Shown here: piece after piece, positions 558 to 24,853 of the stretch
Layout of the letters: each line of letters begins with the position of its first letter
How positions within the stretch are numbered: position 1 is the first letter of the stretch
Source of the DNA: Penicillus capitatus
Lineage: Eukaryota; Plantae; Chlorophyta
Assembly (NCBI GenBank): GCA_965649825.1
Contig: OZ287703.1
Location: 310,001-374,000 of the forward strand
Length of the DNA stretch: 64,000 nt
Direction of reading: 5' to 3'
Translations under genes and position numbers: made by a program
Notes under the pieces: generated by a model
Told to the model about the DNA's origin: nothing
Database searches by the model: none
Seen by the model: only the letters and a program-made list of their open reading frames with translations

Positions 558-1802
558 CTTTTTTTGTGTAAGCAACAGAGGCAGAACGTTTCGCGGGAAA
601 GCAGCAGTGAACAGTTTCGACCGGAAACGCCAACAGCAGAGAACAGCAATGAATGGAGGACCGTCCAAGTGGTGGTGGTAGTGGCGAGATCTTAATGTTG
701 CGGCAATGTGCGTGTGCCGGACACGCGCTTACAGCTGGACCGCATCAGAACCGTGCGTGCGACAGGCGCGTGTCGCGCATCGATGCACCCGCTTACCTGA
801 CCGTGCTCTGAACAGGACAGATGCTCAAAATCATGACAAAAGCTAAAGACGACGTCAGTCACACCCACACGCCTTTACACTTCAGAGATTCGCATCGCCG
901 ACGGGCGTCAAAACGAAGCGCATTCGACGTGTTAATGTCCTGGAGGGTATTTGACTCATGCTCGAGCAAGCAATGAAGATAAAGTACCTAAGGTCTCCGT
1001 CATTCGTCGGCCTTCTATTCGTCGCCGAATGCAATTCTCATTTGCGAAGCTTGACGACGGATTGCCCTTTCGACACTGTCCAACGGCTGGACCTAGGTGA
1101 AACCGCTGCACCATGCCGTTTGTCGAGATATCGAACGCAAGGGGTTGACGCACTGTTCGTTATTCGATGGTCTTTTCCTGGTGCCGTCGTCTATCCTTCA
1201 CTCTTGTGCATATTCGGACGATGCCCACCATGTCCATTTTCTATCAGATCCTGCTTTACAGTGGCAATGGCAAGGTGAAAGAGCAAGAGGCTGCCCGTTC
1301 AATCGCATAACATAAAAAAGACATCCATGGTGGGATCGTCAGAAACGACACCTGTCGTGTCCCTGTGTCCCATCGAACGTTGCGATAGTAGAATGATGCA
1401 GTTATGCACGTTGCTGCAAGAGCCATTTCTTAAACGCCAACCGAAAAGGGACAAAACTCGAGAATCTTACGAATCGCTGCAACGTTTTTGTTTCTCGAAT
1501 ATGTCAAACGAATGAATCCGTCACATCAATAACCTTGCACATGTCTGCGTGCCATCCGCCTTGTTTTCGAAGGAGATAGCACGACATAGTATCCAGAAGG
1601 TCTTGTCAAAGGAAATGAATGTCTGCGATTATGGCTTCGTTCTAACATCATCGTCGGCTCTGAGCACACCAGACAGATATAAGTTATTCATCATGGCATT
1701 TGATGGACTCCTTATGCAACGCCATTCGTTACTCTCGATATCCCGCCAGCAACAGCGATTCTCATGACTATGGCTGACAAGAGCATGCAGAAGTAAACAT
1801 CG

Positions 1803-2920
1803 CTACAAGCTGAAAAGCAGCAAAGAGGCAGCCATGACTGCCATACCGATAAAAACGCTGGCCGTTACGTACTGATCGTTTGCATCAAATTTCAAGGCCG
1901 TTGGAATGAGTTCCCGAATCGAAATGTAGACCATCATGCCTGCCACGACAGCAAACATGATGGCGTATGCCAAGTCTCCCATGTTCGAGAGCACCAGCCA
2001 TCCAAAGATGGCACCAATTGGCTCAGATACTCCCGAAAGGAATGCCCAAAAGAATCCCTTCATGCGCGATTTGGTGGCATAGTATACTGGCATCGCCACG
2101 ACGATGCCTTCTGGAACGTTGTGCAGTGCAATGGCAACGGCGATGGCGATTCCGGCAGTGGGATCTGCCAACGTTCCGACAAAGGTGGCAAGACCTTCTG
2201 GAAAGTTGTGCAGCGCAATGGCCAAGCCACTCATCAGTCCCACACGTTGTAGATGCTGCTTCTGGACATTGCGTTCTTCCGACATGCTTGCGGCATTTCC
2301 TGCACCGTTGTGACCGTTTTCGCAGGCCTACAGCCACATATGGGTGGATGCTTCATATCCGACCGTCATCATACTACAGGCTGCCTACCTGATTCGCATT
2401 TCTGCCATTTTCGATGTCGTCACTCGACGTGCCTTCATCAGGTTGCATCTGTGCATCGGATTTTGCTTGCATCGTTGCTCCGTCCGGCAGAGGCTGATCG
2501 AGTTTGCAAATGAAATGGACAACGCCATTGAGAAGAGCCGTGATGATGATACCGGCAAAGAAACAGAGTGTTGCATATCTCATGGCTTCATCGTCATCGT
2601 AACCTTCGTCGGTAAAACCCTCAACCGACTTCACAAGAAAGATCTCTCCAAACGACACGTATCTGAACAGAATGATCGCGCTTGTCCGATAGACGCTTAT
2701 GCAGAATGGGGTATGACAGCATAACGCCTGCAGAGGCTCCCAGTGCGATAGCGAGTGTGCGTACATTGGCGATGTTTGTGCAGAAGGCGATACATGCACC
2801 GACGGTTGTCGAAAGCCCAGCCGCTATCACTAATCCAAAAGCCAAAGCGACGTCTGACCCAGTTTCAACTCCCTGAGACAACGAACGTCGTTTCTGACGA
2901 CGGAGAATCGACGGTACCAT
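1803..2920 (-). CDS. ZIP/ZupT-family metal transporter, paralog A (ZTP29-like)
   Basis: ZIP signatures IALHNFPEG and IALHNVPEG, SGVSEPIGA, AGMMVYISIRELIP. Same ATG-only first exon (2918-2920) and second intron position as paralog B. Ends in TAG at 1803-1805. Confidence 0.93.
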
Positions 2921-3093
2921 TTGACGTAGATATGTATGGATGACTGACTGGCGGAGTCTTTCGGCGTAGGAACGGCTGGAATCTACCAGACCGCAAAAAA
3001 CGCGAAGGACTCTGGAAAGGGAAATGGAAAAACGAGCGAAGAGGTGGTGGCAGATTTCAAAGCATTCGAGATCCATCTGATGATGACGAAAAG

Positions 3094-3175
3094 CGCTGAG
3101 GGCAGGGTTCGAACCTGCGCGGGCAGAGCCCAACAGATTTCGAATCTGTCTCCTTAACCACTCGGACACCTCAGC
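3094..3175 (-). tRNA. tRNA-Ser(CGA): tRNA-Ser, anticodon CGA, long variable arm, no intron
   Basis: Reverse complement GCTGAGG...CCGAGTGGTTAAGG (D arm), ACAGA-TTCGAAA-TCTGT (anticodon arm), GGGCTCTGCCC (variable arm), GCAGGTTCGAACCCTGC (T arm), CCTCAGCG. Followed by a TTTT Pol III terminator. Confidence 0.97.
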
Positions 3176-3372
3176 TGCGATGAACGCAAAGGCGTTTTTG
3201 GTTTTTTGGATGCGGGTGGCAACGGTGACGTGGACTGGCGACGTCTGCCAGACACGTCAGTCACATCACGTCACGTCGCCCACTCGTTTCGATGACGCAT
3301 GGCGGCGCCCATCTCGCATTTCATGGTCCTCTGGACTGTCCGGCACAGCCTGTGTACATAAGAGTGCGATGT

Positions 3373-5072
3373 TTATTCGCGGTTCTCACACTTGGGGCAG
3401 TCACACACAAATCCATAGTCACGCAGGGCATCGATCCTCTCTTCATAGCACATTGCCTCGTCAATGTACGAAATGGTGATCTCTTCTCCTTTCTCGATAT
3501 CTCTGCTTGCTACGAGAACGAGTTTGTGATCGAGATGTTCTCCCTCGTTTCGAATCTGGCACGCATTTGGGCAACAGGAGTGATTCGCACAACAGGCGAC
3601 GCCGTAGTAAGCAGAGCCCTGTCAAATCACGATCTCTCGGCTTTACTGAATAAACAGCTTGTTCAAGTAACATACTTCTGCGCTGTGTTGGGCAGCATCG
3701 ATGAGTGTGTCTTTGAGAGCGGGATATTGTTCCCAGAGCGACTGGACAACATAGTCCTCTTCCTGGTTCAATTGATCAATGTATGATTCCAGAGGAGATG
3801 GAATGGAAACAACAATGTTGTTCTGCTCGATCAGACCCATCAAAGATCCCAAAACCTAAAAGGAGACAGAAACTGTCGAATAGACGCTTCAGGTGTCCTC
3901 ACTTCGGCACTGAATAACTGATCGAAGGGCTCGGCTGAGATTGCTTTCTGTAATAGCGTAGACGCTTCGGCGATTAGGGATCTGAATAAATATGCTGCCT
4001 GGCATCTGGATTCTTAGCCAGTATGCGCCTACTGGATTTCTGTTTTGAAGACATGATCGTCGCTATATTCTGGAGGTGTTGGTAAGCTGTGCCACCATAG
4101 TGGTCTCCATGCATGCCAGAACGGACCCCATGCGTCCTGCGAGCACATTCACCGAGGATTCCAATCGTGGTTGTTACCCTCAGACACTCGACAAGATCTT
4201 TGCCAGGCATCGTCTGAGCCTTCTTGCGAGCTTCGTTCAGGCAGAGACACGAAGCTTGTGCTGCAAGATAGAGACTGGGATTCGTTTCCAGACAGAACGC
4301 CTCAAATCTCGCAAGCATTTCGGGATCGACCTTGACTTCGCGTCTAGACTGCAGGTATCCTTTTGCCGTTGTGGACATTCCGACGGAGCACCTGCGATCC
4401 GGTGACACCCGTGTGCAGAGGTATTGGTGATAGGTACCCCCAGCAGCCTCTCTGCATTCTGCACTGCAGTAAACAGCTCCACACGCACAATACTCAACGC
4501 CTTATAGGGCATCGATGGCATGACCCGTTATTACAATGCATCCCTCACGCTTTTGTGCCGTGTCATACTGTGGAAGGTTCACGTTGCCAGATTCAAAGAG
4601 ATCCAGCAAAGCACACTCGTCATTGGTTCGTGATTCTTTGTTGAGTAAATACCAGTGAAGTTGATCTTCTAATGTCCCTTCGTTAAAACAGAGATTTCGG
4701 TATGGATCGATATGTGAACACAGCCTGCCTGCATGCCTAAGGCAGTGGGCGCATACCAAAGCTTCGGTTTTGTTTTCGGTGTCCTGTAGAGAGATGATAG
4801 GCGTTTCCGTCAAAATGATCTCTCCTTCAGAAATGCAGGTTTCGGCAAAAAGGCCTCGACCTTTCTTCGGAGTTCGATGCTGAAGGACAGCGACTTTTCC
4901 TCCGACCCCTTTACATAACTGAAGGAAACAGTCGGGCGAGATCAAACGCGGCAATAGATAAGAACACGTTTTGGTAGTGAACGGCGTCTTCGTCTGCTGT
5001 AGGAGAATCGAGAAGGATAGAAACTGTGTCGTCATTGCTGTTCGGAATGTGACTACTACTGGCTGTCGACAT
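3373..5072 (-). CDS. SET-domain lysine methyltransferase, ATXR2/SMYD5-like (multi-exon)
   Basis: SET-N KGRGLFAE, Cys knuckle VCAHC, CANHSCCPNA, GEEITISYIDE, post-SET YGFVCDCPKC, TAA at 3373-3375. Start codon approximate. Confidence 0.85.
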
Positions 5073-5261
5073 AAGTGAGAGACGACACGTCAGTTGGGCA
5101 AAGTGCGTTCGTTCGCGTTGTCCAATCATACGATCACGTTTCGCATACTCAATCTCTGCCTCCTTTCGCTACTGCTTTTCACCGACGTCCCTGTTGTTTG
5201 TCATCCTCTCTCCTGTGCACTTCGAACGTTTCTTTTCCTTCTTGTGCTTTTTTCTGTCTTA

Positions 5262-8200
5262 ATGAAGTGGCTCTCTTTGTTATGTCTGCTACTCACCAGC
5301 TTCCTTTTCTTACGCTGCGTGTTCTGTCAGCGCACAAGTACGAATGCGGAGCTTTCGTTTGGATGCGATGCTTTGATCTAGGTGTTTGCGACACTTACGT
5401 CAAAAGAAACACGGTGACCGTGAATGACCAGATAGTGGAAGATATCGAAGCTTCTCGCGCGTCTTTTCAAGACGTTGTGGATTGTCTGGAACGAGGCGGC
5501 ATTATTCAGTTCGCAACCGCGACGTTTTCAGTCGATGAGACGATTCGCCTCGAAAAAGATATCGCTATTACATCGACTCATCGCAGAAAGACATCTTTTG
5601 CCTGCAACCAACAACCCGTTTTTGATATCAGGTCGACCCGCTGTCGTGACATAAGGTCGTGACGTCATCGTGCGTGTGTTTAGGGGGAGAGCAACAGTTG
5701 ACATCTCAGAGATTCGTATCAGAGAATGCGAACTGCAAAGCGCTGACGCTCCGATCATCATTGACTCGGGATCGACTGTCATTTTTCGATCCACAGAATT
5801 TTTCCGGAATAAAAACGACGAAGGATCCAGTGGCATTCGGGCTCTGGACGAATCAAGCATCATTATTGAAGATTGTGAGTTCTTGGAGAATCAGGGAGTA
5901 TCGGGGACAGTAGTCCTCGAGAATGCAAGTAGCCTCACTGTTTCTGGATCAAATTTCACGGGCAACAACGCCACAAGCACGGAAAATGGAGGCGGCGTCT
6001 TCTCTATTCAGGTGTGTTCGTACACGATGCCGGCTCTGTTGTGGATGTGTGATGTGGATGTAGAGTGAGGGTGTGTCGACGACAGTCGTTGTTAAGAATG
6101 CAAGCACGTTCATTAAGAACGAGGCCGTGGGAGATGGAGGCGCCTTTTATGTTTCTGGCGAGGATGGCATTGCTTTCACTATCGAAGACACGGTTCTCAG
6201 AGAGAACGTGGCAGGAAGGCGCGGAGGCGCCGTTTTCATATCCACGGGCGGCAATCTGATCGTCAGGGATGCATTCTTCGTCGAGAACGAATCGAATCGT
6301 ATTGGTGGCGGCGCTATCTTTGCAAAGGTCCGTTCCCTTCATCACCTCATCTCTATTCAGTAAAGCGTATTCGGATGGCAGGATGCAGAAGGGGATGAAC
6401 CGCTAGACATCAAGATTTCAAGCACGACTTTTGCCCAGAACGAGGCCAAAGGTTACCTTGGCTCTGGTGGCGGCATGCGCCTTCAAGGGAAAAGCGTCAA
6501 CTGCACAATCACCGATTCCGTCTCTTTCGCCCTCAACACAGCGGATCTCGACGGTGGAGGCATGCATATCTCCAATCAAGCAACAGCAGAGATCAGTGGG
6601 GCTTCGTTCGTCGGCAACGAAGCTTCCAACGGCGGTGGTGCTGCCCTGTTTATTCTGGTAGGGTTCTTTCTCATAAAGAGTGTTTCATTGAGACCTTGCT
6701 GATGATGTGACAGTCATCACAACAGAACCGGGCACTTACCGTGGATGTCGTTATCACGGATACGGCATTTCTGTTCAACCAAGCATTGTATACTGACCGA
6801 GGAGGGGGATGCATCGGTGTTGCAGGTTTTGGATCAAATGTGACAGTTACTGACTGCATTTTCAGTGACAATGATGGTGGGATGGGAGCTGGAGGAGCAA
6901 TCTATGTCTTTGGCGGGCCCGTCGTCAAAATCATGAGATCCGCATTTGAGAGGAACAAAGCCGAATGGGGAGGGGCGTTGTATGCTGAGGTAGACAACAG
7001 TACATCCACCGTCTCAATGATTTGCATGTGCTCTAGAACGATGCCCTATACGAAATAAAATCGTCTACGTTCGTGGAGAATGTGGCAGGTGAAGGAGGCG
7101 CCATTCACACACGAGGAGACGTAGACGTCGCCATAGACAACTGCAAATTCGAAGAGAACAAAGCCATGATTGAAGGGGGAGCTGTCAAGGTGCGGAACTA
7201 TGCATCGGCGGAAAACGAGCTGGCACGTTTCCGAATAAGGAATAGCACCATCGTGGACAATGAGGCTGGAATCAACCTGTCCGAAGAAAGACTTTTCGGA
7301 ACGGAGACGCAGGGAGGAGGAATCCTAGCAGAAGGCAGTGGAGTCGAACTAGAACTGGAGAACAACATGTTCAATCGCAATGTGGCCTCTAATGGAGGTG
7401 CTTTAAGCATATTTGCCGTTGCTGACTGCCGTATCAACAAAGACAACAAGTAACATATGGACTGAATCTTTGGAAGCACAAGAGCGGTGTGCAGGTTCGA
7501 GGGCAACAACGCAACATTCGGCGCGGGCATTCGCTTGGTCGTTGATGAGCAAGTCAAACCCGGGAGGGATATATATCGCATTGCTAACGCTGTTTTTCGA
7601 GGAAACCGTGTCGAGTTCGAAGGAGGGGCTATTTATGTCTCAAGCACTCGTGCTGAATTCAACTCAGTGTCTTTAAATGTCGAGGCGTTTCTTTTACAAG
7701 TCGAGAACAGCATGTTTGAGAATAACGAGTGCGTCCATCTATTAAACTCTATCTTCACAAACCTAGTGTACTGACAGAGCGAGACGTGGCGGAGGGGCGT
7801 TATCGGCAATTGGTTCTGCTGCCAGGATTCATGGATGTGTATTCAAATCGAATACAGCAGTGGCGAATTCAGCAAGACAATCGACTCAGTTTTTTGGCTA
7901 TGGAGGAGCCATGAACATTCAGACCGGTTCTTCGATCGAGTGCAAAAACTCAACTTTCGTATCCAACAAAGCGAATGTTGGCGGGGCGGCGTGCGTCCGA
8001 GATGCTTCCCTCTTTGTGATAAACACTAATTTCACCCAGAACGCAGTTCTTCCCAGAGGAGTTGGCGGCGCTGTGGCAGTAGAAATCTCCAGAGGAAAAG
8101 GCAGCCCAGTCCTTGGCAGCTCCTATAAACTACGCAACATTGTCTTCCAATGTCAATTCTGCAATTTTAAAAAGAATAACGGTTCACTTGCTGGAGGTCT

Positions 8201-11062
8201 GTTCGATCATACCTACATCGATGTCTGATGATGGCTATTTGGACATCTAGGTGCAATGCATGTCCATGATATGGATCCTGGTGGGACCTATGGAGAGGAC
8301 AACGAGTTGAAGATCGATGGCTGTACCGAGAAGAATCAGAATACATATTGGACTCCAAAAAATGAGTTGAGATGTTCAACTTACCTCAGTTATCTCAAAA
8401 GAGTAAATGATCGATCCATTCGTTTGAGAAACACGACCTTCACAGCAAACAGAGCAAGAGCAGGCGGCGCCATCTTCACAAACAATCTCACGATGATCAG
8501 CATTCTTCCAGATCTGCAGTATGATGCAAACAAAGACATAGACAAGTCGCTGGGATACGCCTTGACAAAGAATACTTCTCAACTCGAAAGCTCATCTGTG
8601 TTTTTCGAGAAGAATGTCGCCGTCAATAATGGATATGGTGATGACGCTGCATCAACTCCGTTTGTGGCGTTTCTTCTCGAGCTGGACGATGAAGAGCACC
8701 TCAAAAGAGACAATATCACAAAAAGCTTGTTCCTCAGTGGAGATCGTCTTCAGTTCAATGTCGAATTCGAAGATGGGCTTGAGCAACTCGTTACATATGC
8801 TGGTCTCTTAACAGCACACATCAATTGTGATGAAGATGAAATGAAGAAACGAGGATCTGGCTGCGATCAGCTAGAGATTACTGGACAGGAAATAGCTCAG
8901 GTGAATGAGGACGGAACAATGAGTTTCACCGATATCAGATTGAGAGGTCTTAAGGATCAAACATACATTCTTCGTGTTGACTACAGTGCAGTACCAGAGC
9001 TGCAGACACTGGACGTCAAGCCATCTTTTATCGTTGTGACGATGAGGCCGTGCATGGTTGGCGAGACCACTGTTGTCAGAGACGATCCGTATCTGGCGTG
9101 CCAAGAATGCAGCAGTTCTACGTACAACCTCGACCCCGACGGGACAGAATGCAAACCCTGTCCAGAGAATGCTCGCTGCGAGTCGCGAGTGATTATTCCA
9201 GACGATGGGTATTGGCACGCCTCTCCTTGCTCTGAGCGCATTCAAGGGTGCCTGACTTCCCACGCATGCGCATTTGAACATCGTTCTGAGAATCTAAGGA
9301 ACATAACGGAAAGCATGATCAGCTGCGATGTTGACAGTGCCAAGATTGACGAGTATCAGCAGGCTCAGTGCGGCAAGGCAAGTGATTCGCAAAGCCATGC
9401 AGCACAAAGAGCATTTACCTTTCATCTAGGGTCACACTGGTCCACTCTGCGGCTCCTGTCAGAGCGATTACGGAACATCGTTGTCTTCTAAATGCACCAA
9501 GTGTCCGTCACCCGTCGGCAACATCGCCATCATCAGTGTTTCAGTTTTGGTTTTGATAGTCTTGTCGGGCATCACAATAAGAGGAATGCTGGGTATCACG
9601 ACCAAAAGATCGGCAATGCTTGGAGGCCGAGGAAGGTTTCTCCGATCCATTCATCAATTTGATTCGCATTCCTCGAACAGCGAGGAAGCAAAGGAAACGC
9701 AAGAGTTCAACAAAAGGAGCAATGATAGTACAGAGGACAGAAGAATTGAAGGTCTGCCGACCACGGAGACAAATCTTGCACGTTGGAAGGCGGTTGAGAT
9801 GCTGAAGGTAATGCACCAGTCACTCAAATACTGAACTCAGTTTATGAATCGACAGATTTCTTTGAGTTACATTCAAGTGACTGTTCTGATTGCATCCTTA
9901 AACGTCGGTTGGCCTCTCTTCTTTGTCATCATTGCCGAGGCAGCAGGTCAAAAGGCATTCCGATCAGGGTCAGATGCTAACGACGTTGCGTTTAGAGTTC
10001 ATCGGAGGACTTGCATCGGAGAGTGTTCGACGTTCCGTTGTGTGTCTGAGCACCGAAGACAGCTTCCTGCATCCAACGGCATCGGCATTCATCGTTGTCG
10101 TCTGCGTCATACCATGCATCGCCTTCCTTCTGCTTGCTTTCTTCTGGACGACCCTCGCGCTCTTCTACTGCATAGAGAGGCCAGTCCAATACCTTGCAAA
10201 GAGACTGCTGCTGTCCGTTATGGTTCTTTGGTACATCAGCGCAGTTGCAGTGATCAAGACAACTCTCAGCATGGGACTCTGCGTCAGCGTCTATAATATC
10301 GTCCCCGCTGCGAGTAATGTAGAGAAGATCAGCTACTGGGCCGTGGACACTGGTCTGCAATGCTTTCGAGGAGACCATCTGACACTGGTCATCCTGATTC
10401 TCGCGTTCGTGGTCATCGTGTATGCAGGCCTGTTGGGTTTCTTTATCTGGGCGCTGAGGTTTTCCAAAAACAGCCGCGCTGATACAACCAGCTGGGTCTA
10501 TGAAACCACTGGATTCCTCTATCGCAGCTACCGACTTGGAAGCTGTCAGTACTGGGAGGTCGTGGTTTTGATTCGAAAGGCCACGATTGCCTTTCTCGTC
10601 TTCTGCGCGCATCGTTTCAACGGTCATCTGCCGATCGCTGGACTGGCTGCCTTTATTTCCTTGGCCATGGGAATGCAGATCGTTGTTATGCCATACCGGC
10701 GAAGATTCGACGACCTAAACTCGATGGATAGCGCTTCCCTTTTCGTGTCCCTTTTGACGACACTGGCAGCTTCGGCATTAAGAAGCGAAGGATTTGAAGA
10801 TGAAGTGTGGGGTCGCACTGTCATCACTGTCGCATGTGTTGTGCTCAATGCTCTCACGTTCGCTGTGCTATTGTTGTCTCTGCTCACCCACTTTGTCGAC
10901 TATCTGAAGCTTCGTCTGAGCGAGGAGGGAAGACCGGTCGACCTCGGTGCCGGGGTATTGCAGGTCATCAAAGTGTGGTTAAGTATTGAGCTTCAACAGT
11001 TGTTTTGTTTTGTCGGCCTGGACAATCCCGACGACGCATCAAATCTATCAGATGGTATATGA
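5262..11062 (+). CDS. Giant secreted-ectodomain multipass protein: signal peptide, PMP-like GGA/FxxN beta-helix repeats, Ig-like segment, Cys-rich region, about 8-9 TM helices (receptor 1)
   Basis: Signal peptide MKWLSLLCLLLTSFLFLRCVFC. Many FxxN...GGA(I/V/L) repeats. CQECSSSTY..CKPCPENARC, WHASPCS, CGKGHTGPLCGSC. TM region with GFLYRSY..YWEVVVLIRK. I placed 12 short introns that keep the frame open. TGTAA at 11124-11128. Confidence 0.88.
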
Positions 11063-11983
11063 CGGACTCTCTCTACAAGCAACTCGCTGTTTTTCCGAAT
11101 GTCAAATGGAGGATAGAGCTTATTGTAATTCTTGGACATGATGATAGCAGCCGACCGCGTAGAGAATGTGATGTAACTGTCATAGAAGATAGCTCGTCGC
11201 GGGCCGTATACACACAAAGTGCCATCTCCAGCAATTTTCTAAAGCCCTTGATATGAAGTTGACTATCCAGGCAATCGGCCTTCCCACATTATTATGATCT
11301 GACAGTAAAATCTAGAGAGCGTGAACTGAGGATCTGCGAAAGTGTTTTCAAAGGCGTTTTGAGTGAGAAATTGGCAAACAGAGAATTTAATGGCGTAGAA
11401 ATGTTGGGGATTTCTGCTATGGAGAGCGCATCCTCATTCAAGTTCTCCGGGGTCGTTCAGTCTGTCTGTGTCGGAGGACGGAAATGTCGACTGCAATACC
11501 ATCGACTCCACAACATCGGCAACGGAAATGTAGACCATCCGAGGCACGAGCGCGACACTGTTAGTGCAGAAGTGGTTGGGGCATAAGGGAACAGGTCAAC
11601 TGGAGACGAATGCGTCCGCTCCAGTTGAACGATGACGCGCGTGTCGGATCTGAGGAAATGCAGTCGTCGATCGAACGGAACTAAAGACGTCTTAAATAAG
11701 TGTGGTGGTACCAAGAGAGTTCATAACACCTGTCTCGATCTATGCCAATCGTGCATGGGTCAAGGTTCAGTCCCCGGGGAAAGACCGTCACATCGATAAT
11801 ACCACGATTGCTGCGCGACAGGGAAATGCTCATTCGGCAAATCTCAATAGGCTAATTAGAAACACTTCTTCGGTCTACTTTCCAAAATGACAACAAAAAA
11901 TGAGACGTTAGAAAGGATTGACTTTTACTGACCTGAAATAGATGTATCAGGTTGATTAGAAACGTAAAGACACTAGATGGATT

Positions 11984-14900
11984 CTAGACCGTGTGGCAGC
12001 GGATGTTGAACCAGAGCTTAAAGCCGCGCACAAGAATAATGCAGGAATAGATGGCATGTACGCAAATAATACCGACGGTGCACAGAACTCTGGCATTGTC
12101 CACAGGGTGTTCATCGCCCAGAACCATCGCTAGAAGAACATTGAGTGACGACAGGATCAGAGAACTCGTCTCGAAGAAATTGAGATTCACATAGGTTTGG
12201 CGGTAAGGTGAGCACATCGCTTGAGCGCTCAAGAACAACGTCAGAGCCACTGCCGCGATCACTTGCTGCACATTTCCGCCCAGAGAATGGGAAAACACAC
12301 AGAGAGCGCCGAGAAACGCCTTTCTCGCGAAGACGATCAATTCCCAGTAGAAGAATCGACTCTCGAAAGACCAGAACATGAAACCAAAGATTTGGAAAGC
12401 CGTTGAGTTTTGACCTAAACCGGAGGCATTGTTGGCGGCGCGATAAATGTAGATAAAACTCAGGAGGGGAAATCCGATCGTCACACAAAGAAGGATAAAA
12501 GCTGCGATGAAAACCATCGCCCAGTGCACGCCTTCATAGCACTCGACTGCAGTATCATCTGCCAATACGAGGGACTGCTTGTCCGACGACGGATCCAACG
12601 AATCGTATACGTTGATGCAGTAGAATGCCCGTACTGCGAGCTTGGTAATCCCGAGGTAAGAGACGTAGAAGACGACAGAGAAAGTGAGCAAGATAAAGTG
12701 GAAAAGCGAACGGAAGCATCGGCAGGTAAACTTGTTCATCACCGCTCGTACGGCGATCAAACAACCGCCCACGATGAAAGGAGTGACTGCTCCGGCTATC
12801 AAGCGCACGAGAGGCCTGGCAGAGGAGCCGGAGCGTGTGATCACGCAGTCCACAGTGAAGTTGGTGACAAGAAGTGTCACGCCTCCCAACGTCGCTACAA
12901 CGCACACGTCACTCGTTTTGCCTCCTTCAACGGAGGGATGGACGTACTGGCCAGTTCAAAGATGGTTCTGACAGTGGGGACCCACTTCACGTGCAGCGAG
13001 ACCAACACAGCTGACAACTGCAAGTAATTCATCCAGATCTGCTCAGCAGGATACATTGCAGAAAATACAAACGACTCGGCAGAGGTGTTGTACCTTGATG
13101 AGCTCCGCCAAAGCGTGCTCTTTGTTTTCCAGTTCGTCAACGCAATGGCCGACGACCTCTCCGGGGAAATTTTCAAGGAGAGGACTCGTCGTTTCTTCTT
13201 TCGGTTCTTGAATATCGACTCTCGAGCTGTGCCGACCGGAGGTTGATGCCTGTTTAGACGCCTCGTCTACAGAAGCACCGTAGAGGCGTGTCGGCGAGTG
13301 TCGCCAGATCTGGACATAGGCCACCAGGCCCATCCAGACCAGTGCCGCTATGAACAGAAGGACTTGCACTGCTTCGTTTCGGCATTCGAAGCACATCCAC
13401 TTGGTCCATGAACCGTATTCTTTCGCACAGCTTCCACACAGCGGCCCTTTGTAACCCTGAATCGAACAACCACAGCCTCTCCTTCAGGATTCAAAGAATC
13501 GGGACGGATCGCACTTCGTCGCATTGTAGAGTGTCGTATGTGTCGACGGCATTCGTCTCCACTTCGCAAGAACTGAGGCCGTCCAAGAATTCTTTGAGCT
13601 TCTCCCCCCTGCCCGTGTACTTACAGGCGTCTTCGGTGAGGCAGTCTCGACTTCGACTCTGGCAAGGCGTCTTGTGCCACTTTCCGACGGTTGGTGCGAG
13701 GAACAACCCATGGCATTCACTTCCGGCAGGGCAGAGCACGCACTCTTCGCCGCTTTTATAGTGCGCTGAATCGCATTTCGCACAAGTGGAGCTCTCTTTG
13801 ACGAACACTTCGTCGGGAGCACATTCATCGATCGTCAACTTAAGATGCTTTGTTTTACTAAAACTGCTAATGTTGTAGGAAACGCTCAGGGTGTACTCGC
13901 CCGGTGGTGCATATATCATGACTGGGGGGAAGCTGACGACGTTGTCAACCATGTGTGCCTTGATATCTGAACGGTTTCCTTCAAAGTAGCCACCGTGGAA
14001 CACAAGATTCGCATCGATCTTTAGGTTCAACGAAGGTTGAAGCTCGTTTCCAAAGACGTCGAGTTGCTTCATGTGTATCGCTGGAATTCTTGAGCCACTT
14101 CGAAGAGGTCCAAGATTCAACAAATCCGAATCGTCGTTCTCTGCCGTTTTCTCTGTCATATCAGAATGATTCACGGCTACGAATCGGACAGAATGAAAGA
14201 GGGAACTGAATTCCTCAGTCTCGAGGTCTTTATCTGTGACGATATTGTCATCCCAGTTTTCACAAAATCCATCTTCCGTCGTCTTGCTCTTTGCTGCATC
14301 TTCAACTGACTTTAGTTCCGAGGAAGAAGATTCCACATCGCACGAGTAGAGTGCGCTTGACGGGTCACTCAGAAAGGCGATGGCACCATAGTTTTTAGCT
14401 TCATTCTTTTTGAACACGACCCTTGAAAGCGTTAAAGTCGGACAACTTTCTGAGGGATCTGAGTTTAAACAAGACACCCATTCGTTTTCCACTTGAGTTT
14501 GGTAGATAGCTCCTACAGATTTCTGTTTTGCAAGAGATACTCGGTATGTGTAGACGCACCTCCGATTTTGGCTTTATTGCCCGTAAGAGTAGAATCTGAT
14601 AGTTGAAAATGATTCTCTACTTGCTTGAAATCGACAAAGAGTCCGCCGCCTTTTTCTGTTGCACTGTTATCTTTGAATTTGCAGTTTGACATGTCCAAAC
14701 TGGAATTGGTCGCATACATAACACCACCCGTGTTTCTGGCCTCATTAGCTTCCGAACGCACATCCTCCAGATTCGCTTCGCCGGATGTAAGGTAGATGGC
14801 ACCGCCATCTACTTCGGCACGGTTGTTCTTCAGTACAATCGATTTCTCTAGCTTCGCATTCCCTGATGCAACAAACAAGGCACCGCCGTGTCCATTCGCA

Positions 14901-17479
14901 CTGTTGCTGCTCATCGTTGCTTCTTCCATGACCACGTTGCCCGATTTCAAACAGAAGGCGCCGCCGTCTCCTCCGGCACTGTTGTCGTGCCACTTCAAAT
15001 TCGTCAAGGTCACTCCACCCGACGCAACACAGAAAGCACCACACGCTCCATTCGCACGGTTGCTACTCATCGTTGAATTCTCCATGGTCACTGTGCCCGA
15101 CTTGATATAGAAGGCGCCGCCGTCTCCATCTGCATGGTTGTCACTGCATTCCGAATGCGTCAACTCCGCAGTGTCCGACGCGACATAGAAGGCACCGCCG
15201 TTCAGTTTTGCACTGTTGCCGTTCCAATTCGAATACACCAATTTGGCGGTGCCTGAATTGAGATAGAAGGCACCTCCGTTCTCCGACGCGAGGTTGTCGA
15301 TATAATTCGAATTCGTCAAGGTCAGTTTGCTGCTCGACGTAACAAAGACGGCGCCTCCATCTCTTTTGGCTCTGTTCGTGCTGTAAACTGAATCCGTCGA
15401 GGTCAGTTCGCTGCTCGACGTAAGATAGACGGCACCGCCGTCATTTTCGGCAGAGTTGTTGCTCCAATTCGAATCTGTCAAGGTCAGTTTGCTGCTCGAC
15501 GCAACATAGACAGCACCGCCGTCATTTTCGGCAGAGTTGTTCTTCCAATCCGAATCCGTCGAGATCAGGTGGCTGCTCGACGTAAGATAGATGGCACCGC
15601 CGTCATTTCCAGCAGAGTTGTTCTTCCAATCCGAATCCGTCGAGGTCAGGTGGCTTTCTGACGCAGCATAGACGGCGCCTCCATCTCTTTCGGCACTGTT
15701 TGTGCTCCAATTCGAATTCGTCAAGGTCAGTTTGCTGCTCGACGTAACAAAGACGGCGCCTCCATCTCTTTTGGCTCTGTTCGTGCTGTAAACTGAATCC
15801 GTCGAGGTCAGTTCGCTGCTCGACGTAAGATAGACGGCACCGCCGTCATTTTCGGCAGAGTTGTTGCTCCAATCCGAATCCTTCGTGATCAGGTGGCTGC
15901 TCGACGCAACATAGACGGCACCACCGTCATTTTCAGCAGAGTTGCTATCAAACGTGATCTTTTCTCCAGTGAAACTCGACTTAGTGGACAGATGTACTGC
16001 GCCACCTTGTTTCGCTCGGTTATGAAAGAACGAGACATTCTTTACTATCGCATGGGAGGAAATCATTTGAATCGCAGCACCTTGATCCTTGTCTTGACTT
16101 GTCGTCGCCTTGTTCAGAGAGAATTCTGAATCGGCGAGGCTGAGTTCTTTGACGTCCGTCAGCTTAACCACCGTGCACGAATTATCACTGGCGTTGATCC
16201 CTTTCATATTAACTTCAGTGGAACCGGAACCGGAACCGGAACCGGAAATGTCGATCAGAGCATCTTTTTCACTACAGAAAGACTGTCCTCATAACTAAAC
16301 GCGGTATGATGGTGTGCTTACATGTAGCATCGATTGTTTTTGAAAATGACATTCTGCAAGGAGAAATTGATAGGTGACTTCTCGCTCCCGTCCTCGACAG
16401 TTTGCTTTGCCGTGATTGCTCTGCAGCCTTCGTAGGTGTTGTTCTCAAACTCAACGTTTATGAAAGAAACTTCGCATGATTTGTCTGCTGTGCAATCACT
16501 TGCACTGAACGTAGACTCCCCGGTAGAAAGGCAGCCTTCGATTACTATATTTGCAAAAGTAACACTCGCATCCCTGGACGCATTGTAAGAAGCACGAAGA
16601 GATATAGGAGTACACGCACTTGACGGCAAACAGTTTACCACCGCTCTTGCACTTGAACATAGCTTTCCCTCCAGTAGCTGCTGTCTCCATAGGCTGCAGC
16701 AGATCTTCTTTTGTGATATCGGCAGGGCTATCTCCCCTGTATGTCGCTATCGTAACGTCTTTTGTAATGCTCATAAGAAGGGCTGGTGAAAGTTGTTGAG
16801 TTGTATTGAACAACAGGAAGTCGTTGTCTTCGAGGCAATCTGTCACCAGGTGCATACACTTGCCAAAACCATTTTCTTTCAAGAGCTCGATTGTCTTCTC
16901 AGTCATGCACCATGATCCACCTCCGGATCCACTTCTGACATGGTAAAGGTCCACATTCTGCTTCAAATCTTCGCAATCTACATTTTTATGATTTGAATGA
17001 ACCGCATCGTGGACAGCGAGAAAGAGACTTAGTTTGGCACAATCATCGCTGTTTCGTTCCATCGTGTTGCTGCCTTTCTCGTTGATTTCAGCTTCTGATG
17101 ATGCCATCGATGTAACATCTGACATCGTGCTGCGGCGAAAAAATGAAGCTTCGTTCCAGGTCGAGACGGAATCTATCTCCCCGGCACGGTCTAGGGACAA
17201 CAGAGAGTCACGTTTGCGCGACCTGCAACCGATCGCGAAGACACCGAAGGTGCATGCAAATGTCGCATGGAAAATTCGGACACGGGGAGAATGTTTCGTA
17301 TCCTCGTTCGCAGGTATGATCGTTTGCGTGGCGACCAAGACCTTACCGTCAGAAACAGTCTCTGAGCTTCCTTTGTTGGAAATCGTGCTGTCGATAAGAG
17401 CATGTATGCATGGCGCAGTGCAGCAGACGAAGAGTACTAAGAAGTGCCCGAGGGCTTGGCTGCGATGTTTCTCTCTCAT
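11984..17479 (-). CDS. Second giant PMP-like repeat, Cys-rich, multipass protein, convergent paralog (receptor 2)
   Basis: Signal-like N-terminus MREKHRSQALGHFLVLFVCCTAPCIHA, about 17 GGA rungs in one long exon, CAKCDSAHY..CVLCPAGSEC, WHKTPCQ, CDEGYKGPLCGSC, TM region FGFMFWSFESRFFYWELIVFARK. TAG at 11984. Confidence 0.88.
15304..15960 (-). repeat. Intragenic tandem array of eight 81-nt (27-aa) beta-helix rungs in receptor 2
   Basis: Units such as NSAENDGGAVYLTSSSELTSTDSVYST. 15304-15468 is identical to 15709-15873 (165 bp, offset 405 = 5 units). Confidence 0.95.
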
Positions 17480-17717
17480 GACGAACGGAGACGCACAAGA
17501 GCAGAGCAAAGTGAAGACTGAAAGGAGAAAGCTGAAAGTCACAGCACGGTGCTGTGTACTCGAATTTAAATGAACGCGCTGTCTTGATTTTTGTCTCGAT
17601 TTTTTGATGCGTGAGAAGTTCATGTAGAACACACGTTAGAGGCAGCAGTTGGCCGCCAGATTTGTTCTATGTTTGGACTCAAGAACGGTCACAGTAAAGG
17701 CAGACGGCTTTGAAGAA

Positions 17718-17834
17718 TGACAGCACGCATCGCTGCGTAACGTATGGGCGATTTTTTACTGACAGCACGAACAGCTGCGTAGCGTTCGGACAATTCTGGA
17801 CTGACAGCACGCATCGCTGCGTAGCGTATGGGCG
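17718..17834. repeat. Three imperfect direct repeats with 42-bp period, each palindromic
   Basis: tgacagcacgcatcgctgcgtaacgtatgggcg (17718), tgacagcacgaacagctgcgtagcgttcgga (17760), tgacagcacgcatcgctgcgtagcgtatgggcg (17802). Confidence 0.9.
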
Positions 17835-17849
17835 GTTTCATGAACCCTA

Positions 17850-20800
17850 CATCCTATTTCAGTATTCTTAAACCAACTTGGCTGCAAGGCAGAACTAACA
17901 GGGTTGAGGATAAGAAGAAAGATATCTTGAGGATCAACGTAGCTATCATGATCCTCCGTGCAGTGCCATAGAGCGAAGACCTCTGCTCGTGTCCTTGTCT
18001 AGTTTGCCTAGCAGATTCCAGGCACTGATGTGAAGCTTGTTCTCCATGGTATAGCCGTCTAACCACACCAGAGCTTCCTGTTAACGACCCTCGCAAGATT
18101 GCTGGATTGCCTAGGAGCACATAGGCAGTTGCTCGTACACACCCAATGTCTGTATGTTGATGTACACGGCGTCCAGAAGAGTGATAAGAGTATTGGCATC
18201 GTCCATCCAGTTCTCTGTGACGGTATGAGTGGTTGCTAGCTTCATTGTGGCATCTCGGCTCAGTCTCGGAGGGTCCTTGAGTGGCCGACAGAATTATCTC
18301 TTGGACGACGCCTTCCGTATTCATATGCTCACGATTTCTCTTTCTTTGTTCGTCCATTATACTGCGTCCTTTGCGGCACGATGAATTTGAGCTTTGTCTC
18401 GTGTTTTACTGCTTGGTATCTGCCCTCCATGAAGATTATGAGCAGATCGTCCCAAGACCACTCGAACACTCTCGCATGGACCACAACGGTGTTCGTGTTC
18501 TCATATGCACTCGCCAGCGCTTCCGAATCCACATCCCCACTCGTCATAAAATTGGTGCAGACGTGCCAGAAACGGAATACACTGTAAATGGCATCCAAAC
18601 ATTTGCTTGGCTTGTGGGAGGAGCGACAGAGTGTCTTTGATCTTCTGACGCTCGATCAAGTGTTAGAAAAGCTCAAAATGAAAACGCTAAGCCTCGCATG
18701 CAATGAACAGATCATCTCCTCCTTCACCGCGATTATAGTACAGCTCAGCTCTCTCTTCTCTTCTTCGCAGATATTCGTGCGGTCAGTGATACTCAAGGAA
18801 CTATCTTTAACAGTTCTGCATACTTGAGAATGGAGTCGGGACTCATAGGTTCTGATTCTGCCTTTTGTCCTGACAAAGTCGTCGAAAGAGAACGCCTTTC
18901 TAATCGTATCCGTCGTTTCCGAGCACAGCAACTTGGTTCTTTCGATGTCGTATTTCAGCTTGAGGCACGCAGAAGGTTCGGATCATTCTCTTGTTGCACG
19001 TCTAAGCCGACTCGACCAGGTTGGCTGCCTCTTCTCGCCGTCGTGTTCTTTACTTTTCTTTCGAACTCTGCGTTTAACGTTGCTGTAGCGACGATGCATG
19101 TCTCGTCCTTCGAGATCATTCAACGAGTCGCAAGGTTAATACATCGAATTTGCCGAACGGTAAAGTAGATCCACATTCGATGTCGTTTCAAACCTCTACA
19201 TGAACACCGGAGATAGGATCTGAATGCGGATTGGGAAGATAGATCCTTCTACCCTTCGTGTCGGATACAGCAGGGCCTTTGGAGCGGTCTGTAATACTCT
19301 CATAGGCACTCCGGGACCTGCCCTTCACAGGCGCCAGTTTGTACAAGACTGTCCGATCTGGTGGTACGGTCTGTCCATAAACTGCAAATATCGATTCGTT
19401 AACGGCATATACGTCATCCCGCATCCAGTAATATTACTATCACCAACCAAAGAAGACAAATGGCAGAGTTTTGCAAGAGCAGAATTCCCCTCTCCCAACT
19501 CATTCGAATCTGCCAAATCTCCAATCAAATCGGGGACTTTTTCGATGTTACCATCCTTGCTTTTTGAACAATACTCGATGAGGTTCGCTATTGTTTTCGT
19601 TTATTTCAACATGGGATCTATGCGTTTAATGATTAAATTATGTTGACGTTGTTGATGATCACTCTCACGAGAGAAAATGAACGTTTTGCATTCGCATCGT
19701 GAAAGTCGAACGCTCAAAACCATCGTGCAATAAGTTCGGTTCAGCCGTAGGTGACCGATTCTGCTGTTTGCACAAATTCGGTGGACGTTGAGTTTTTTTT
19801 ACCGAAGTGGGAATTTTCTATATGTCGAGAATTCGTTCCCCGGGTAGGAGAAGATCATCATTGCTCACAGTATTGCTTCTTTGATACTGGCTATCGCCGT
19901 GCGGTGAAATGGATTCTTCTCTTGCGGCTGGCTGCGTCTCGTTGTCGTATGGTGACGCGCCTTGCTCACCCTCTGCTTCTGGACGTTCCTCGGAAAGACC
20001 GGGGGCACTGCTTCTTCAAGGATGACGGGGATGTCGGCACCGCGGTCTTCAGACCTCCTCCGGGTGTCGTAGAGACCCACGTTGTGAACAATCCGTTCAG
20101 CACCCCGGTGTAGGAGTTCCGAACGTTCGCCTCGTCGGAAGCGATTGAGACTCTCTTGGAATGTGGGGTATAAATGCGCGTAAGGCACGAAAGCACGCGA
20201 GATGTTTTGCTCCGCGTCGTCGTCTGCCAGACTGGCCACAAGCGTTTTCAATCGAACGTCTTAAAGGAACAACAAAAGGACAAAACGCAAGCCGTCCTCC
20301 ACCTCTTATCCGGTTCTGGTGATGTGACTTTCCTAGGCAGATGAGTCATCCGAGCGCCAGAACCAAAAAAACGCGCCTCAGATGACTCAACCAGCGTCCC
20401 CCCACCGCATGGACTCCAACGAAAACAAGACAGTAGTCCCATCGCCGGGCGACACTGGCTAAAAATGAAACGATAAGCATTCGCTATCATGATAAAATCG
20501 CAGACTGGACGGAGATCTGTGTTCTCGTACGATCATTAAAACGCGACTCGAGAACCGCGACAAGGTTTTGTCTTAAATGCCGAATGGAAAAACGGTGGCT
20601 CAAGAAACTCGCCTACGGTGGTGAGGACCACCAGAGATCATCTCCATGGGGTCACGTTTAGTTTGGAAATGCGTGGGATGGGTAATCAGATCCACGAAAT
20701 GTGTAGTGGACGCTGCAGTCATGTTCTCGGTTACCATTCGTCCCAAACTCGTTCGGACTCAAATATATATTTGTCCAAACAAGGAACTAGAAGTGCAGTT

Positions 20801-22088: not shown

Positions 22089-24853
22089 ATGACCCACCAG
22101 CTTACCGATGCGGCAGCCAAAGGATACGCTCTTTTGCGAAAATGGGAAAACCTTTCGCCATTAGACACCGAGCAATTAGCTGCGATCGATCTTATCGCGA
22201 AGCACAGCCACACGCGCCAGCTTCCCGCCCACCTTGTATCTACACCGACGGACCATGACACTTCCTCGCGACAGGAAACCGTATCAGCTGAAGAAACAGG
22301 CGCCGTCTTGCACAGCAGTCAGGCGTTCTATCAATGGTATGCCAAACTGGAGGCCCTCCGAGTCTCTGAGGCAGAACGAAAATATGACGACTACGCTGCT
22401 ACACTAGCTGCGCAGTTGAAAACCTGTCACGACGCTTCTCGACTGATACACGACACCTTGACAGCACTGAACCAAACGCTGAAGCTTTACAAGGATGCTG
22501 TGGGAAGGTGATTCCATATGGCCTTATTGAGTTCTCACTCTTTTGCAATCAACAGATCGCGTTCGATGAGAGAAACTGGGGAGAGACTGGTTGCCGAGCA
22601 GGAGCAGCTGAATGAATTTGCTGTGGCCATTCGAGAACGTCTACAACATTTTGATGAGCTGGAATCTGTCGCTGCCGAATTCCATTCTGTGGCGACGTCC
22701 CTTGAAACAGCCGATCTGCAGACACAGAGCACTTCCATCTTTGCCAGATTTCTCGCCGTCCTTGCACGACTGGATGAATGCATTTCCTATGTCAGCGCCA
22801 ACCCACAGTGATCTTGCTTCGATCCTGTCCTTCTGAGACAAGCATGCGTCATCTTACAGATATTCTGAAGCTGTTGTCTACGAGGCTCGGTTTCGACAGC
22901 TGCACAGCCGAGCGCTTGGTGGAATACTCCATCGAGTACGCGAGATTCTTAAATTCGCTGTGAAGAACCTGTCACCCAAACCAACATCTCCGTCCGAAAC
23001 GGTTACAGAGGATGAGGAAAGGAGTAACCATTACATCAAGTGTGTGACCACCAGTGGATGATGCATGTTAAGATGAACATTTAGATTCCGTGCTTTGGTG
23101 GAAGAACAACTGCAAGCCGTTTTCGCAGAGCTCTGCGAAAGAAGCACCCATGCGGCGTATAAAAAGTCAGTCGTCTATCTCTTTTTGACCTTAAATCTCA
23201 CTCCATCTCATTTGACCCAGGATCTACGAGGACTGTCAACTTGCTTTTTGCAACGCACGGAGAGCTCTGCTGACGGATCCAGTCAAAAAAAGGATAGACG
23301 AGATGCGAGAGGAGCCACTTGCCTCTCTGCTCAGGGAAGGCTTTTCCAACTTAGTGAACGTAAGCTCGTCGAGTTGGGTATGGCGGAACTTCATGTGCTG
23401 TTGGGATCGAAGGTGTGTCGGCTGGAACACGAGCTCTTTCTGCGCTTCTTTCCGGAAAAGGATCATTCACCGACGGCACTGACGTCAATGATCGAAGCTC
23501 TCGGGACCATTCTGTACGAGCGCATCCGTCCCAGACTCATTGCTGCTAAATCCGTTAACGATCTCTGTGATTATGCGTCCATCCTGCAATTGGAAATAGG
23601 AGAAGGTCAGATCGAGAGGCAGGCAGACATGACGACATCTGCCTTTCAGCTAACGCTTTCTTTGATACAGTGCCGGTGAATCTGCTCATGCGTTGAGATC
23701 TGTCGTCAGCCGGACATTGGCCGACGCACAGGGGAGACTTGTCTACAAAGCGCAGGCCTTTATCGAAGAGAAGATCTCGCGTTACGAGCCCACAGCCGAG
23801 GAGATGGCACTCGTTACCATGCCGCCGTCACAGGATGACGAAGATGCACAAGACGAGACTCCGTCAGCAACTGAGCGGGACTCGTGGTACAGTCCACTGC
23901 GCGTGGCACTGGAAACGCTAGAGAAGCTCTATCTCGCACTCGAGCCGACAGTTTTCGGCGGCATCGCTCACGACACCGTCTGCGCTTGTTCGCTCTCCAT
24001 CGAAAAGGTACATACATTCCCTCCCAGTACACATGTCGTTATCGCCGTTGTCATCACGCTGCATCGACAGGCACTCTCGGTCGTCTCGCAGACGGCGGGT
24101 GCGTTTCAAGGGCAGTTGTTTGCCATCCGTCATCTGCTGATCCTCAGAGAAGAGCTCGTTCGATTTCGAATGGATTTCTCTCTGACGGAGAAGGATCTCG
24201 ATTTTCATCATATGAGAGATCACATGCGTCGCGTACTGTCGGGTGCGTTGCGTCGTTGCATCTGGCCGTTTGCCAAGGGATCGCCGCAGGAGAGGTGTCT
24301 GTGTTTCGACTGCCGGCAACTAATGTCGCGCAACTTGTCAGCTGGACAGCTCCGAGAGTGACGGACGTGCAGGTCGATTCAAAGAAGAGGCTGGAGAAGC
24401 AACTCAAGGAATCCTGCGAGGCTCTCATCGTCATCGCGACCAAGGCACTTGTGGAACCACTGCTCAATTTCTTGACAAAGGTACTCTCGATCCATCGTCA
24501 TCATGCTCGGACGTGTGTCTCAGGCGAATGCCATTAGAGGAAGCGGCGGAGAATCGAGTGGCAAGCCCTTGCCCGATCACGCCTTTGCAGCTGTGGAGCG
24601 ATTGTCCGAGATCGTTCAGCATGTGAACGCGGCACTGGCGTCGACACTGCCAGATATCGTCGGCAAGATGCGATCGCATCTGCGACAAGAAGGCACATTC
24701 GCCACACTCTATCGGCCAATTCGCGCCAACGTTCTCGACGCGCACGCACAGATGACAACCATCCTCGAAAGAGACTACGATGGTGTGGACATCAGGGATA
24801 TACCCCTCAAGTCGAGGGACGAACTAATCTCGATTATGGACTGTCTCTCGTAG
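22089..24853 (+). CDS. COG3: Conserved oligomeric Golgi complex subunit 3 (Sec34)
   Basis: QFYQWYAKLE, ERLQHFDELE, LARLDECISYVSANPQ, LYERIRPRLI, LADAQGRLVYKAQ, QLFAIRHLLILREELVRFRMDF, KKRLEKQLKESCE. Confidence 0.93.

Follow-up and report, generated by a model that had tools for sequence, protein, structure and literature searches.

Two large genes that face each other in a 64,000-nucleotide stretch of the genome of the green seaweed Penicillus capitatus (contig OZ287703.1, positions 310,001 to 374,000; this whole stretch is called the window, and coordinates below are counted from its first letter) encode multipass proteins with very long and variable ectodomains. Judged by sequence comparison, it is nearly certain that these two genes, here called gene A and gene B, belong to a large gene family of the Bryopsidales that lies within the superfamily of CRMP and PF06011 proteins. 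Each product carries an ectodomain of ~1250 residues, in which a beta-helix is followed by a beta-sandwich and then by disulfide-rich modules ending in a putative DUF7630-like module, and behind it a core of nine transmembrane (TM) helices. From this architecture and from what has been reported on the relatives, we lean slightly towards a reading in which a variable extracellular binder is mounted on a signalling or Ca2+-permeable core of the Pkd2/CRMP type. The main interest of the pair is that it extends CRMP-like proteins to green algae and bridges the CRMPs to PF06011.

Kinship with CRMPs and PF06011 proteins

CRMPs, the cysteine repeat modular proteins of Apicomplexa, chromerids and ciliates (among them TgCRMPA/B and Plasmodium CRMP1-4), consist of variable Cys-rich ectodomains and a conserved core of EGF-like modules and nine TM helices, and some of them carry parallel beta-helix repeats (PMC9815656). 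A CRMPA/B heterodimer is needed for rhoptry exocytosis upon host contact, and a sensor role has been proposed for it; Chromera and Paramecium, which are free-living, have expanded sets of CRMPs, to which a part in sensing the environment has been ascribed as a proposal (PMC9670195, PMC9815656). The evidence that the algal proteins have the same core comes from the alignment of a profile of 47 algal C-terminal modules with CRMP core sequences taken from the S2 Table of PMC9815656. Against TgCRMPA, PbCRMP1 and PbCRMP2 together, hhalign returned a probability of 99.6% and an E-value of 7.4e-24; with TgCRMPB added, the E-value was 8e-25 over 392 collinear columns, running from the juxtamembrane Cys module to TM9. 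When either alignment was reversed, which keeps composition and hydrophobicity, the E-values were 0.26 and 0.11, and thus transmembrane bias is not the cause of the match. Moreover, a profile made from the relatives of gene A alone still matched TgCRMPA (E 7e-6). By the measure of these profile alignments, the Cys module and nine-helix core is homologous to the apicomplexan CRMP “conserved core”, at an identity between CRMP and algal cores of only ~15-25%. An earlier sequence-only reading of this DNA had not named the apicomplexan and ciliate CRMPs, which are the closest described relatives.

The Pfam model of the juxtamembrane Cys module, DUF7630 (PF24633, cut-off 27), matches the CRMPA-clade cores of TgCRMPA, PbCRMP1 and PbCRMP2 at 64-66 bits and that of TgCRMPB at 18.2 bits, below the cut-off. 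Gene A also falls below the threshold (16.6 bits, E 0.009), with the match placed directly before TM1, as do Ostreobium and Bryopsis members in the same place; gene B has no match. Within the algal alignment, the motif GxxGxLCGxC...YG.....C..C is conserved in 47 of 47 sequences. What the algal family and the CRMPs have in common is a signal peptide, a large, lineage-variable, modular ectodomain, a juxtamembrane Cys module (in the algae only a candidate DUF7630), nine TM helices and a cytosolic tail, together with the motifs [Y/G]xLCxxC..[G]Y......C..CP, YGFL..G[FY]....YWE...RK and P[FY]D/R.R....LN..E, and large expansions in free-living members of both. The differences are equally plain. The host, a green alga, does not belong to Alveolata and has no rhoptries or mucocysts to trigger, and the algal ectodomain consists mostly of Chlam_PMP rungs, with none of the kringle, MAR or EGF-receptor modules found in CRMPs.

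The link to PF06011, the “TRP” domain of Flc and Pkd2 proteins, surfaced only via relatives, and Pfam scans of single open reading frames (ORFs) of the TM region gave nothing. An Ostreobium member (P0161) scores 49.8 bits and a Bryopsis member (P0128) 32.8 bits (cut-off 28.5 bits), in both cases over TM4-TM9; of 20 diverse cores from the family, 10 match the model at E<=0.01; two Ostreobium members carry the UniRef label “TRP C-terminal domain-containing protein”. Some family members are thus above the PF06011 threshold, but gene A and gene B themselves are below it, and the Flc/Pkd2 TRP-like resemblance proposed in the sequence-only reading stands for the family and not for the two genes. On these matches the algal family is, by transitivity, the intermediate that connects CRMPs and PF06011 proteins. 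In the literature searched, no paper ties CRMPs to TRP-like, Flc or polycystin proteins.

The PF06011 systems considered for comparison were S. pombe Pkd2, S. cerevisiae Flc1-3, A. nidulans TrpR and C. neoformans Flc1. Like these fungal proteins, the algal ones would have their N-terminal domain outside the cell and their C-terminus in the cytosol, with a multipass core in between, but the fungal members have a small ML-like ectodomain in place of the 1250-residue beta-helix ectodomain of the algae. S. pombe Pkd2 is a plasma-membrane protein whose N-terminal domain is extracellular and whose tail is cytosolic; in reconstituted vesicles it lets Ca2+ pass in proportion to membrane stretch, and in the cell it is linked to the control of wall and turgor, governing both turgor-linked growth and the separation of cells (PMC9727806). 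PMC9600462 describes Flc1-3 as regulating flavin transport and calcium homeostasis. From this description, and from the “flavin carrier” annotation of yeast Flc, a different role could be drawn, in which the core is a small-molecule transporter and the ectodomain regulates or localises the transport; the PF06011 matches of half of the 20 diverse cores would fit it. However, housekeeping carriers do not usually bear a 1250-residue variable adhesin-like ectodomain, the family is hugely expanded and polymorphic, and the sole reconstituted PF06011 protein behaves as a stretch-activated Ca2+-permeable channel. We regard a transporter as improbable.

For the core itself, both hydropathy and an AlphaFold2 (AF2) model give nine TM helices. 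This agrees with the estimate of about 8-9 helices with a G(F)xF/Y..Y/F..YWE...RK motif made from the bare sequence, and the motif, in the form GF[LM][YF]...YWE...RK, is present in both proteins. In the AF2 model, TM1 is followed by a disordered, charged, cytosolic loop of ~80 residues, a kinked TM2, TM3 and TM4, then by an extracellular beta-hairpin in which two cysteines are nearly invariant, by TM5, a short amphipathic helix (GFLY), TM6-TM9 and a helical tail. The predicted topology has the N-terminus outside, the C-terminus inside and the Cys hairpin after TM4 on the extracellular side. In this topology the invariant motifs GF..Y, YWE...RK and P[YF]R..F..LN, which are kept across 52 sequences, map to the cytosolic face.

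Several known folds were considered for this core and rejected after Foldseek searches of the Protein Data Bank (PDB). For the canonical 6-TM TRP/polycystin fold, nothing was found at E<=0.001, with TRPM4 appearing only at E 8.9 and a TM-score of 0.14; neither the algal family nor the PF06011 proteins resemble these canonical channels in the Foldseek search. No template was obtained for ABC or other transporter folds. The fold of G-protein-coupled receptors (GPCRs) was rejected as well, the model having nine helices and the best GPCR rows lying at E>6 (none better than E 6.7) with TM-scores <0.2. AlphaFold and Foldseek together delivered, in short, a nine-helix model and no known solved fold to go with it.

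The suggestion of a GPCR-like module, made in the sequence-only reading, found no support in these searches, Foldseek giving no 7-TM match and the Pfam scans of the genes giving neither a 7tm nor a GAIN match. The notion nevertheless deserves to be stated in full: the proteins might be adhesion-GPCR-like receptors that act through heterotrimeric G proteins. Their layout is analogous, with a large adhesive ectodomain and then a multipass core, and the idea has been raised in the CRMP literature, where a PANTHER prediction suggests a GPCR-like role for TgCRMPa (PMC9670195). With nine helices rather than seven, no GPCR in Foldseek at E<=0.001, no Pfam 7tm and no GAIN domain detected, such receptors are very improbable here.

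The gene pair, its family and its divergence

Gene models were built by joining stop-free segments, in three frames per strand, via frame-restoring GT/GC-AG introns. Gene A occupies 5262-11062 on the + strand (ATG at 5262, stop codon at 11060-11062) and has 13 exons and 12 introns coding for 1732 amino acids (aa); gene B occupies 17479-11984 on the - strand (ATG at 17479, stop codon at 11984-11986), with 7 exons, 6 introns and 1728 aa. The genes are convergent, with 921 bp between their stop codons, and the two intron-bearing genes of 5.5-5.8 kb facing each other that had been proposed from the sequence are now confirmed and placed. The introns of gene A measure 44-56 nucleotides (nt), one of them using a GC-AG boundary (9378-9429), and those of gene B 46-58 nt; 4 of the 6 gene B introns match gene A introns in alignment column and phase. 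When both sets of exon coordinates are carried over to L003, a collinear contig with 98.0% identity to window positions 1-19490, the ORFs are again intact. Residues 903-1732 of the gene A protein were also recognised as an exact product of the window. For the last three gene B introns the splice sites are uncertain, and one may differ from the reference annotation; the GAGCAG acceptor of the intron at 13039-13093 would be the obvious candidate for a misplaced splice site. Between the signal peptide and the N-cap, gene B has ~210 residues (28-240, window 16760-17398) with no counterpart in gene A and no domain detected, which may hide in-frame introns or another start codon. All 18 introns of the two genes (window 5338-16619) are uniform, at 44-58 nt; such tiny introns look like a genome-wide trait and possibly offer a gene-finding rule for the remaining window.

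Gene A and gene B align over 1434 residues at 23.5% identity (E 1e-73; 28% in a global alignment), and by this comparison the two are old, deeply diverged paralogues rather than the products of a recent duplication. An exhaustive hidden Markov model search with a profile of the last exon returned 4613 family clusters, defined at 50% identity, at E<=1e-3, 1279 at E<=1e-10 and 172 at E<=1e-30; the eukaryotic family surmised from this one pair is real and large. Details of its members come from the best 150 of the 4613 matches. Among the matches listed, many are proteins of 1500-3400 aa in which the TM domain is C-terminal. Five full-length relatives were scanned, and each of them has Chlam_PMP and/or Beta_helix domains. 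An organism was named for 26 of 30 matches sampled, and it was in every case Caulerpa lentillifera, Bryopsis sp. KO-2023 or Ostreobium quekettii, all siphonous green algae of the Bryopsidales. Family members occur in arrays, with at least 10 on one 576,620-bp contig and several among the Caulerpa gene models g3760-g3785; within the 64-kb window, tblastn found no further members. The sub-family of gene A contains many close paralogues, and gene B is closer to the Caulerpa type, its nearest named relatives being Caulerpa proteins with 35-40% core identity. A word-indexed search yielded only prokaryote-style ORF fragments (ENA, JGI and Logan assemblies), the best at 85% identity, and no distant relatives. 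Public proteomes already list the relatives under automatically assigned names, and proteins of the CRMP / TRP_C kind are known; the family goes undiscussed in the genome papers on Caulerpa and Bryopsis.

Contig L002, from another assembly, holds the closest paralogue of gene A, with an identity of 63-65% over the ectodomain and 85% over the core. It was considered as an orthologue of gene A and rejected: the nucleotide similarity of 76.7% does not extend past the gene borders and the flanking genes are different, which leaves a paralogue or a relocated copy. On L002 (253-5346 and 13770-18744) this paralogue adjoins a gene for a 1697-aa NACHT-HEAT protein and two U-box genes, a neighbourhood reminiscent of innate-immunity-like loci and without synteny to the window.

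In the ectodomains, every motif listed in the sequence-only reading (signal peptide, common N-cap, GGA/FxxN rungs, CxxC..CP..C, WH..P and GPLCGSC) was recovered in both proteins. Each opens with a hydrophobic signal peptide, as seen in hydropathy plots, and has the N-cap motif DCLE...KD[IV].I...F.C and, further on, the motifs CxxC...C.[PL]CP...C, WH..PC and GPLCGSC. The Pfam domain Chlam_PMP (PF02415, cut-off 20.6 bits) scores 117.9 bits in gene B and 26.3 and 34.5 bits in exons of gene A, and Beta_helix is matched in both genes, with 92.8 bits in gene B. Rungs of the form GG[A/G/V]x number 21 in A and 18 in the ectodomain of B, where the period is strictly 27 residues. At 15304-15944 (- strand), gene B contains an 81-bp tandem array of 7.9 copies with 79% matches, as detected by Tandem Repeats Finder (TRF), 81 bp being one 27-residue rung. 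Blocks of 236 bp in this array are 95% identical and spaced 405 bp apart, which argues that rungs were recently duplicated in sets of five; the number of rungs in gene B may differ between individuals. The Ig-like (immunoglobulin-like) segment that had been proposed turned out to be a confident beta-sandwich in gene A (residues 982-1110, predicted local distance difference test (pLDDT) ~90 in AF2), with small disulfide-rich hairpins after it. Foldseek finds for this sandwich only generic Ig-like relations, to S-layer proteins, pilins, PapD-like chaperones and cohesins (E 7e-3 and weaker).

In Chlamydia, beta-helices of the PMP type act as adhesins. With the chlamydial Pmps the algal proteins have in common the GGA(I/L/V) and FxxN repeats that form the rungs of a right-handed beta-helix (PF02415, 118 bits in gene B), and both families are polymorphic and multi-copy. 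The chlamydial Pmps, however, end in a beta-barrel autotransporter domain of the bacterial outer membrane. This barrel is absent from A and B, which end in a eukaryotic alpha-helical nine-TM core, carry introns and, because the window contains a U4 spliceosomal small nuclear RNA (snRNA), can be placed in a nuclear genome.

Comparison with L003 gives, for gene A, a synonymous divergence (dS) of 0.100 and a nonsynonymous divergence (dN) of 0.029, hence a dN/dS ratio (omega) of 0.29, and for gene B values of 0.0105, 0.0028 and 0.27, respectively. In 150-codon windows of gene A, omega is <=0.07 in the TM core and 0.19-0.61 in the ectodomain. By this comparison, both genes are intact and under purifying selection, with the core the most constrained part. 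Positive selection on the ectodomain was considered and was not seen at 150-codon resolution (omega 0.19-0.61). The very divergent ectodomains remarked upon at the outset were thus found again at two distances, in the identities to L002 (63-65% versus 85% for the core) and in the omega values against L003 (0.2-0.6 versus <=0.07). With 4613 clusters and such a difference between ectodomain and core, the family is neither small nor invariant.

It might be argued that over-expansion of the family has left one of the genes, or both, as a decaying or unexpressed copy whose frame is open by chance. A very large family in arrays would provide for such copies, and gene A is unusually diverged from its L003 counterpart. 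But two 5.2-kb reading frames are intact through 18 introns both in the window and in L003, omega is ~0.3, the changes in the TM core are mostly synonymous, and intron positions and phases are conserved. That these are dead genes is hardly credible.

The divergence of gene A is an observation in its own right. Its exons are 4.4% diverged from L003 7000-12800, and its dS is tenfold that of gene B and well above the 1.2% of the spacer between the two genes. The divergence is unevenly spread along the gene (dS between 0.02 and 0.37 per 150 codons) and includes one 24-nt in-frame indel. On the sequence pattern, this excess suggests gene conversion from paralogues or long-kept alleles. In the assembly of ENA sample ERZ25074695, a 6.9-Mb contig is present at 344x and the L003 contig at 30x; the sample looks like a mixture of two related algae, or of genome compartments that differ strongly.

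Readings of function

On the reading that we slightly favour, a variable binder on a Pkd2/CRMP-type signalling or Ca2+-permeable core, the proteins would enter the secretory pathway via their signal peptides and arrive at the cell surface. There the fast-evolving ectodomain would bind a partner, which could be the alga's own wall polysaccharide, some other surface or a microbe, or would bear mechanical load, and the nine-TM core would turn the event at the ectodomain into an intracellular signal. The likeliest route would be a stretch- or ligand-gated Ca2+ flux, modelled on the fission yeast PF06011 protein Pkd2; alternatively, a CRMP-style assembly with partner proteins could lead to a secretory or wound response. 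In a giant walled coenocyte, a family of this kind could serve as a repertoire of wall-integrity, wound or contact sensors. Because CRMPA and CRMPB act as a heterodimer, it may be guessed that A and B pair as well. For a channel-type mechanism taken by itself, our confidence falls somewhat short of even.

Several considerations weigh against this reading. In no stretch of 150 codons does omega exceed 1 against L003, and hence nothing points directly to an arms race. The pairing of A with B is not conserved, the paralogue on L002 having no B-like neighbour. The AF2 models are of moderate quality (mean pLDDT 76 for the TM model and 69 for gene A residues 903-1732), with TM1 and the DUF7630 module poorly modelled. 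The TM core has no match among solved structures, either by Foldseek against the PDB with both AF2 models or by a profile search of PDB sequences, and because no solved structure matches the core, no pore can be located. In Pfam, A and B have no PF06011 match even at E<=10, and neither do the four CRMP cores scanned; the link between CRMPs and PF06011 is thus transitive, through the algal family. Moreover, PF06011 proteins are also termed flavin carriers, and channel activity has been shown in one member only. Surface binding and Ca2+ flux are themselves inferred from architecture and relatives.

The simplest competing notion is that the proteins are structural adhesins or wall anchors. The beta-helix would hold polymers of the wall or the substrate, and the core would be only an anchor or a secretory escort, with no part in channel activity or signalling. 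An adhesin role is known for the PMP beta-helices of Chlamydia, and no pore is visible in the core, there being no structural template. In addition, the CRMP authors suggest an escorter role besides a surface function (PMC9815656). For anchorage, however, a single TM helix would suffice, yet the nine-TM core is the most constrained part of the protein (omega <=0.07), carries invariant charged and aromatic motifs on its cytosolic face in 52 sequences, and is conserved from algae to Apicomplexa. We hold a purely structural role to be unlikely.

A broader proposal starts from the preferred reading of a binder on a signalling core. The algal family may show that apicomplexan and ciliate CRMP cores and the fungal PF06011 proteins form one ancient eukaryotic superfamily of nine-TM force- or contact-gated Ca2+-permeable modules, and that the Bryopsidales multiplied this module and fused it to polymorphic PMP beta-helices as a repertoire for surface recognition or wound sensing. 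Taken as a whole this is speculative and rather unlikely. If true, the CRMP complex would trigger rhoptry discharge as a channel, not as a GPCR-like receptor, and neighbouring genes as diverged as A and B might supply the halves of a heterodimer.

The bridge from CRMPs to PF06011 makes a channel hypothesis for the CRMP core concrete and testable. A large, free-living family provides a deep and diverse alignment of the core, which helps to predict its structure and to pick residues for mutation, and experiments become feasible in mutants of fission and budding yeast and by RNA interference in Bryopsis. For the seaweeds, whose wound healing and wall integrity rely on fast surface sensing, the result is an expanded family of putative surface proteins in giant single-celled organisms that had previously gone undiscussed, with a strikingly polymorphic copy in gene A.

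Feature coordinates and surroundings

Table 1. Features of the two genes and of the rest of the window, in window coordinates.
Feature	Position	Strand	Basis or remark
Gene A exons, first half	5262-5337, 5382-5631, 5684-6011, 6064-6327, 6382-6657, 6714-6989	+	
Gene A exons, second half	7037-7449, 7495-7728, 7778-8196, 8251-9377, 9430-9807, 9856-9946, 9996-11062	+	
Gene A signal peptide, MKWLSLLCLLLTSFLFLRCVFC	5262..5327	+	hydropathy peak, residues 4-22
Gene A N-cap	5474-5605	+	
Gene A right-handed beta-helix, ~21 PMP-type GGx/FxxN rungs	5685..8549	+	Pfam Chlam_PMP, Beta_helix; rung count
Gene A beta-sandwich (Ig-like)	8658..9044	+	AF2 pLDDT ~90
Gene A Cys-rich stalk	9048..9513	+	
Gene A juxtamembrane module, QCGKGHTGPLCGSC...KCTKCP	9366-9507	+	DUF7630-like; interrupted by GC-AG intron
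Gene A nine-TM core	9523..10933	+	hydropathy, AF2 helices, CRMP homology; cytosolic tail on to 11059
Gene A motif GFLYRSY...YWEVVVLIRK	10511-10579	+	cytosolic (predicted)
Intergenic spacer, 921 bp	11063..11983	.	both 3' ends inside; 1.2% divergence from L003
Gene B exons	16620-17479, 16322-16573, 14560-16271, 13515-14512, 13094-13456, 12948-13038, 11984-12894	-	
Gene B beta-helix, ~18 rungs, 27-residue period	14364..16572	-	Pfam, TRF, rung count
Gene B beta-sandwich	13821-14198	-	alignment to gene A
Gene B Cys-rich stalk, end QCDEGYKGPLCGSC...MCFEC	13373-13826	-	alignment to gene A; weak TNFR_ELAPOR1-like match
Gene B nine-TM core	12026..13363	-	hydropathy, invariant residues
Gene B motif GFMFWSF...YWELIVFARK	12320-12385	-	
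Transfer RNA	3094-3175	-	59.6 bits
ORF fragment, COG3 C-terminal match	23693-24361		
ORF fragment, SpoU rRNA methylase match	29712-30887		
ORF fragment, armadillo repeats match	41691-42830		
ORF fragment, MAGE homology match	48800-49480		
U4 spliceosomal snRNA	58616-58740	-	53.3 bits
ORF fragment, FAD/NAD-binding Rossmann fold match	60958-61731		

The window has ~50% G+C, its reading frames are interrupted by very short introns, and it is eukaryotic nuclear DNA. The remaining ORF matches in it are ordinary eukaryotic housekeeping content.

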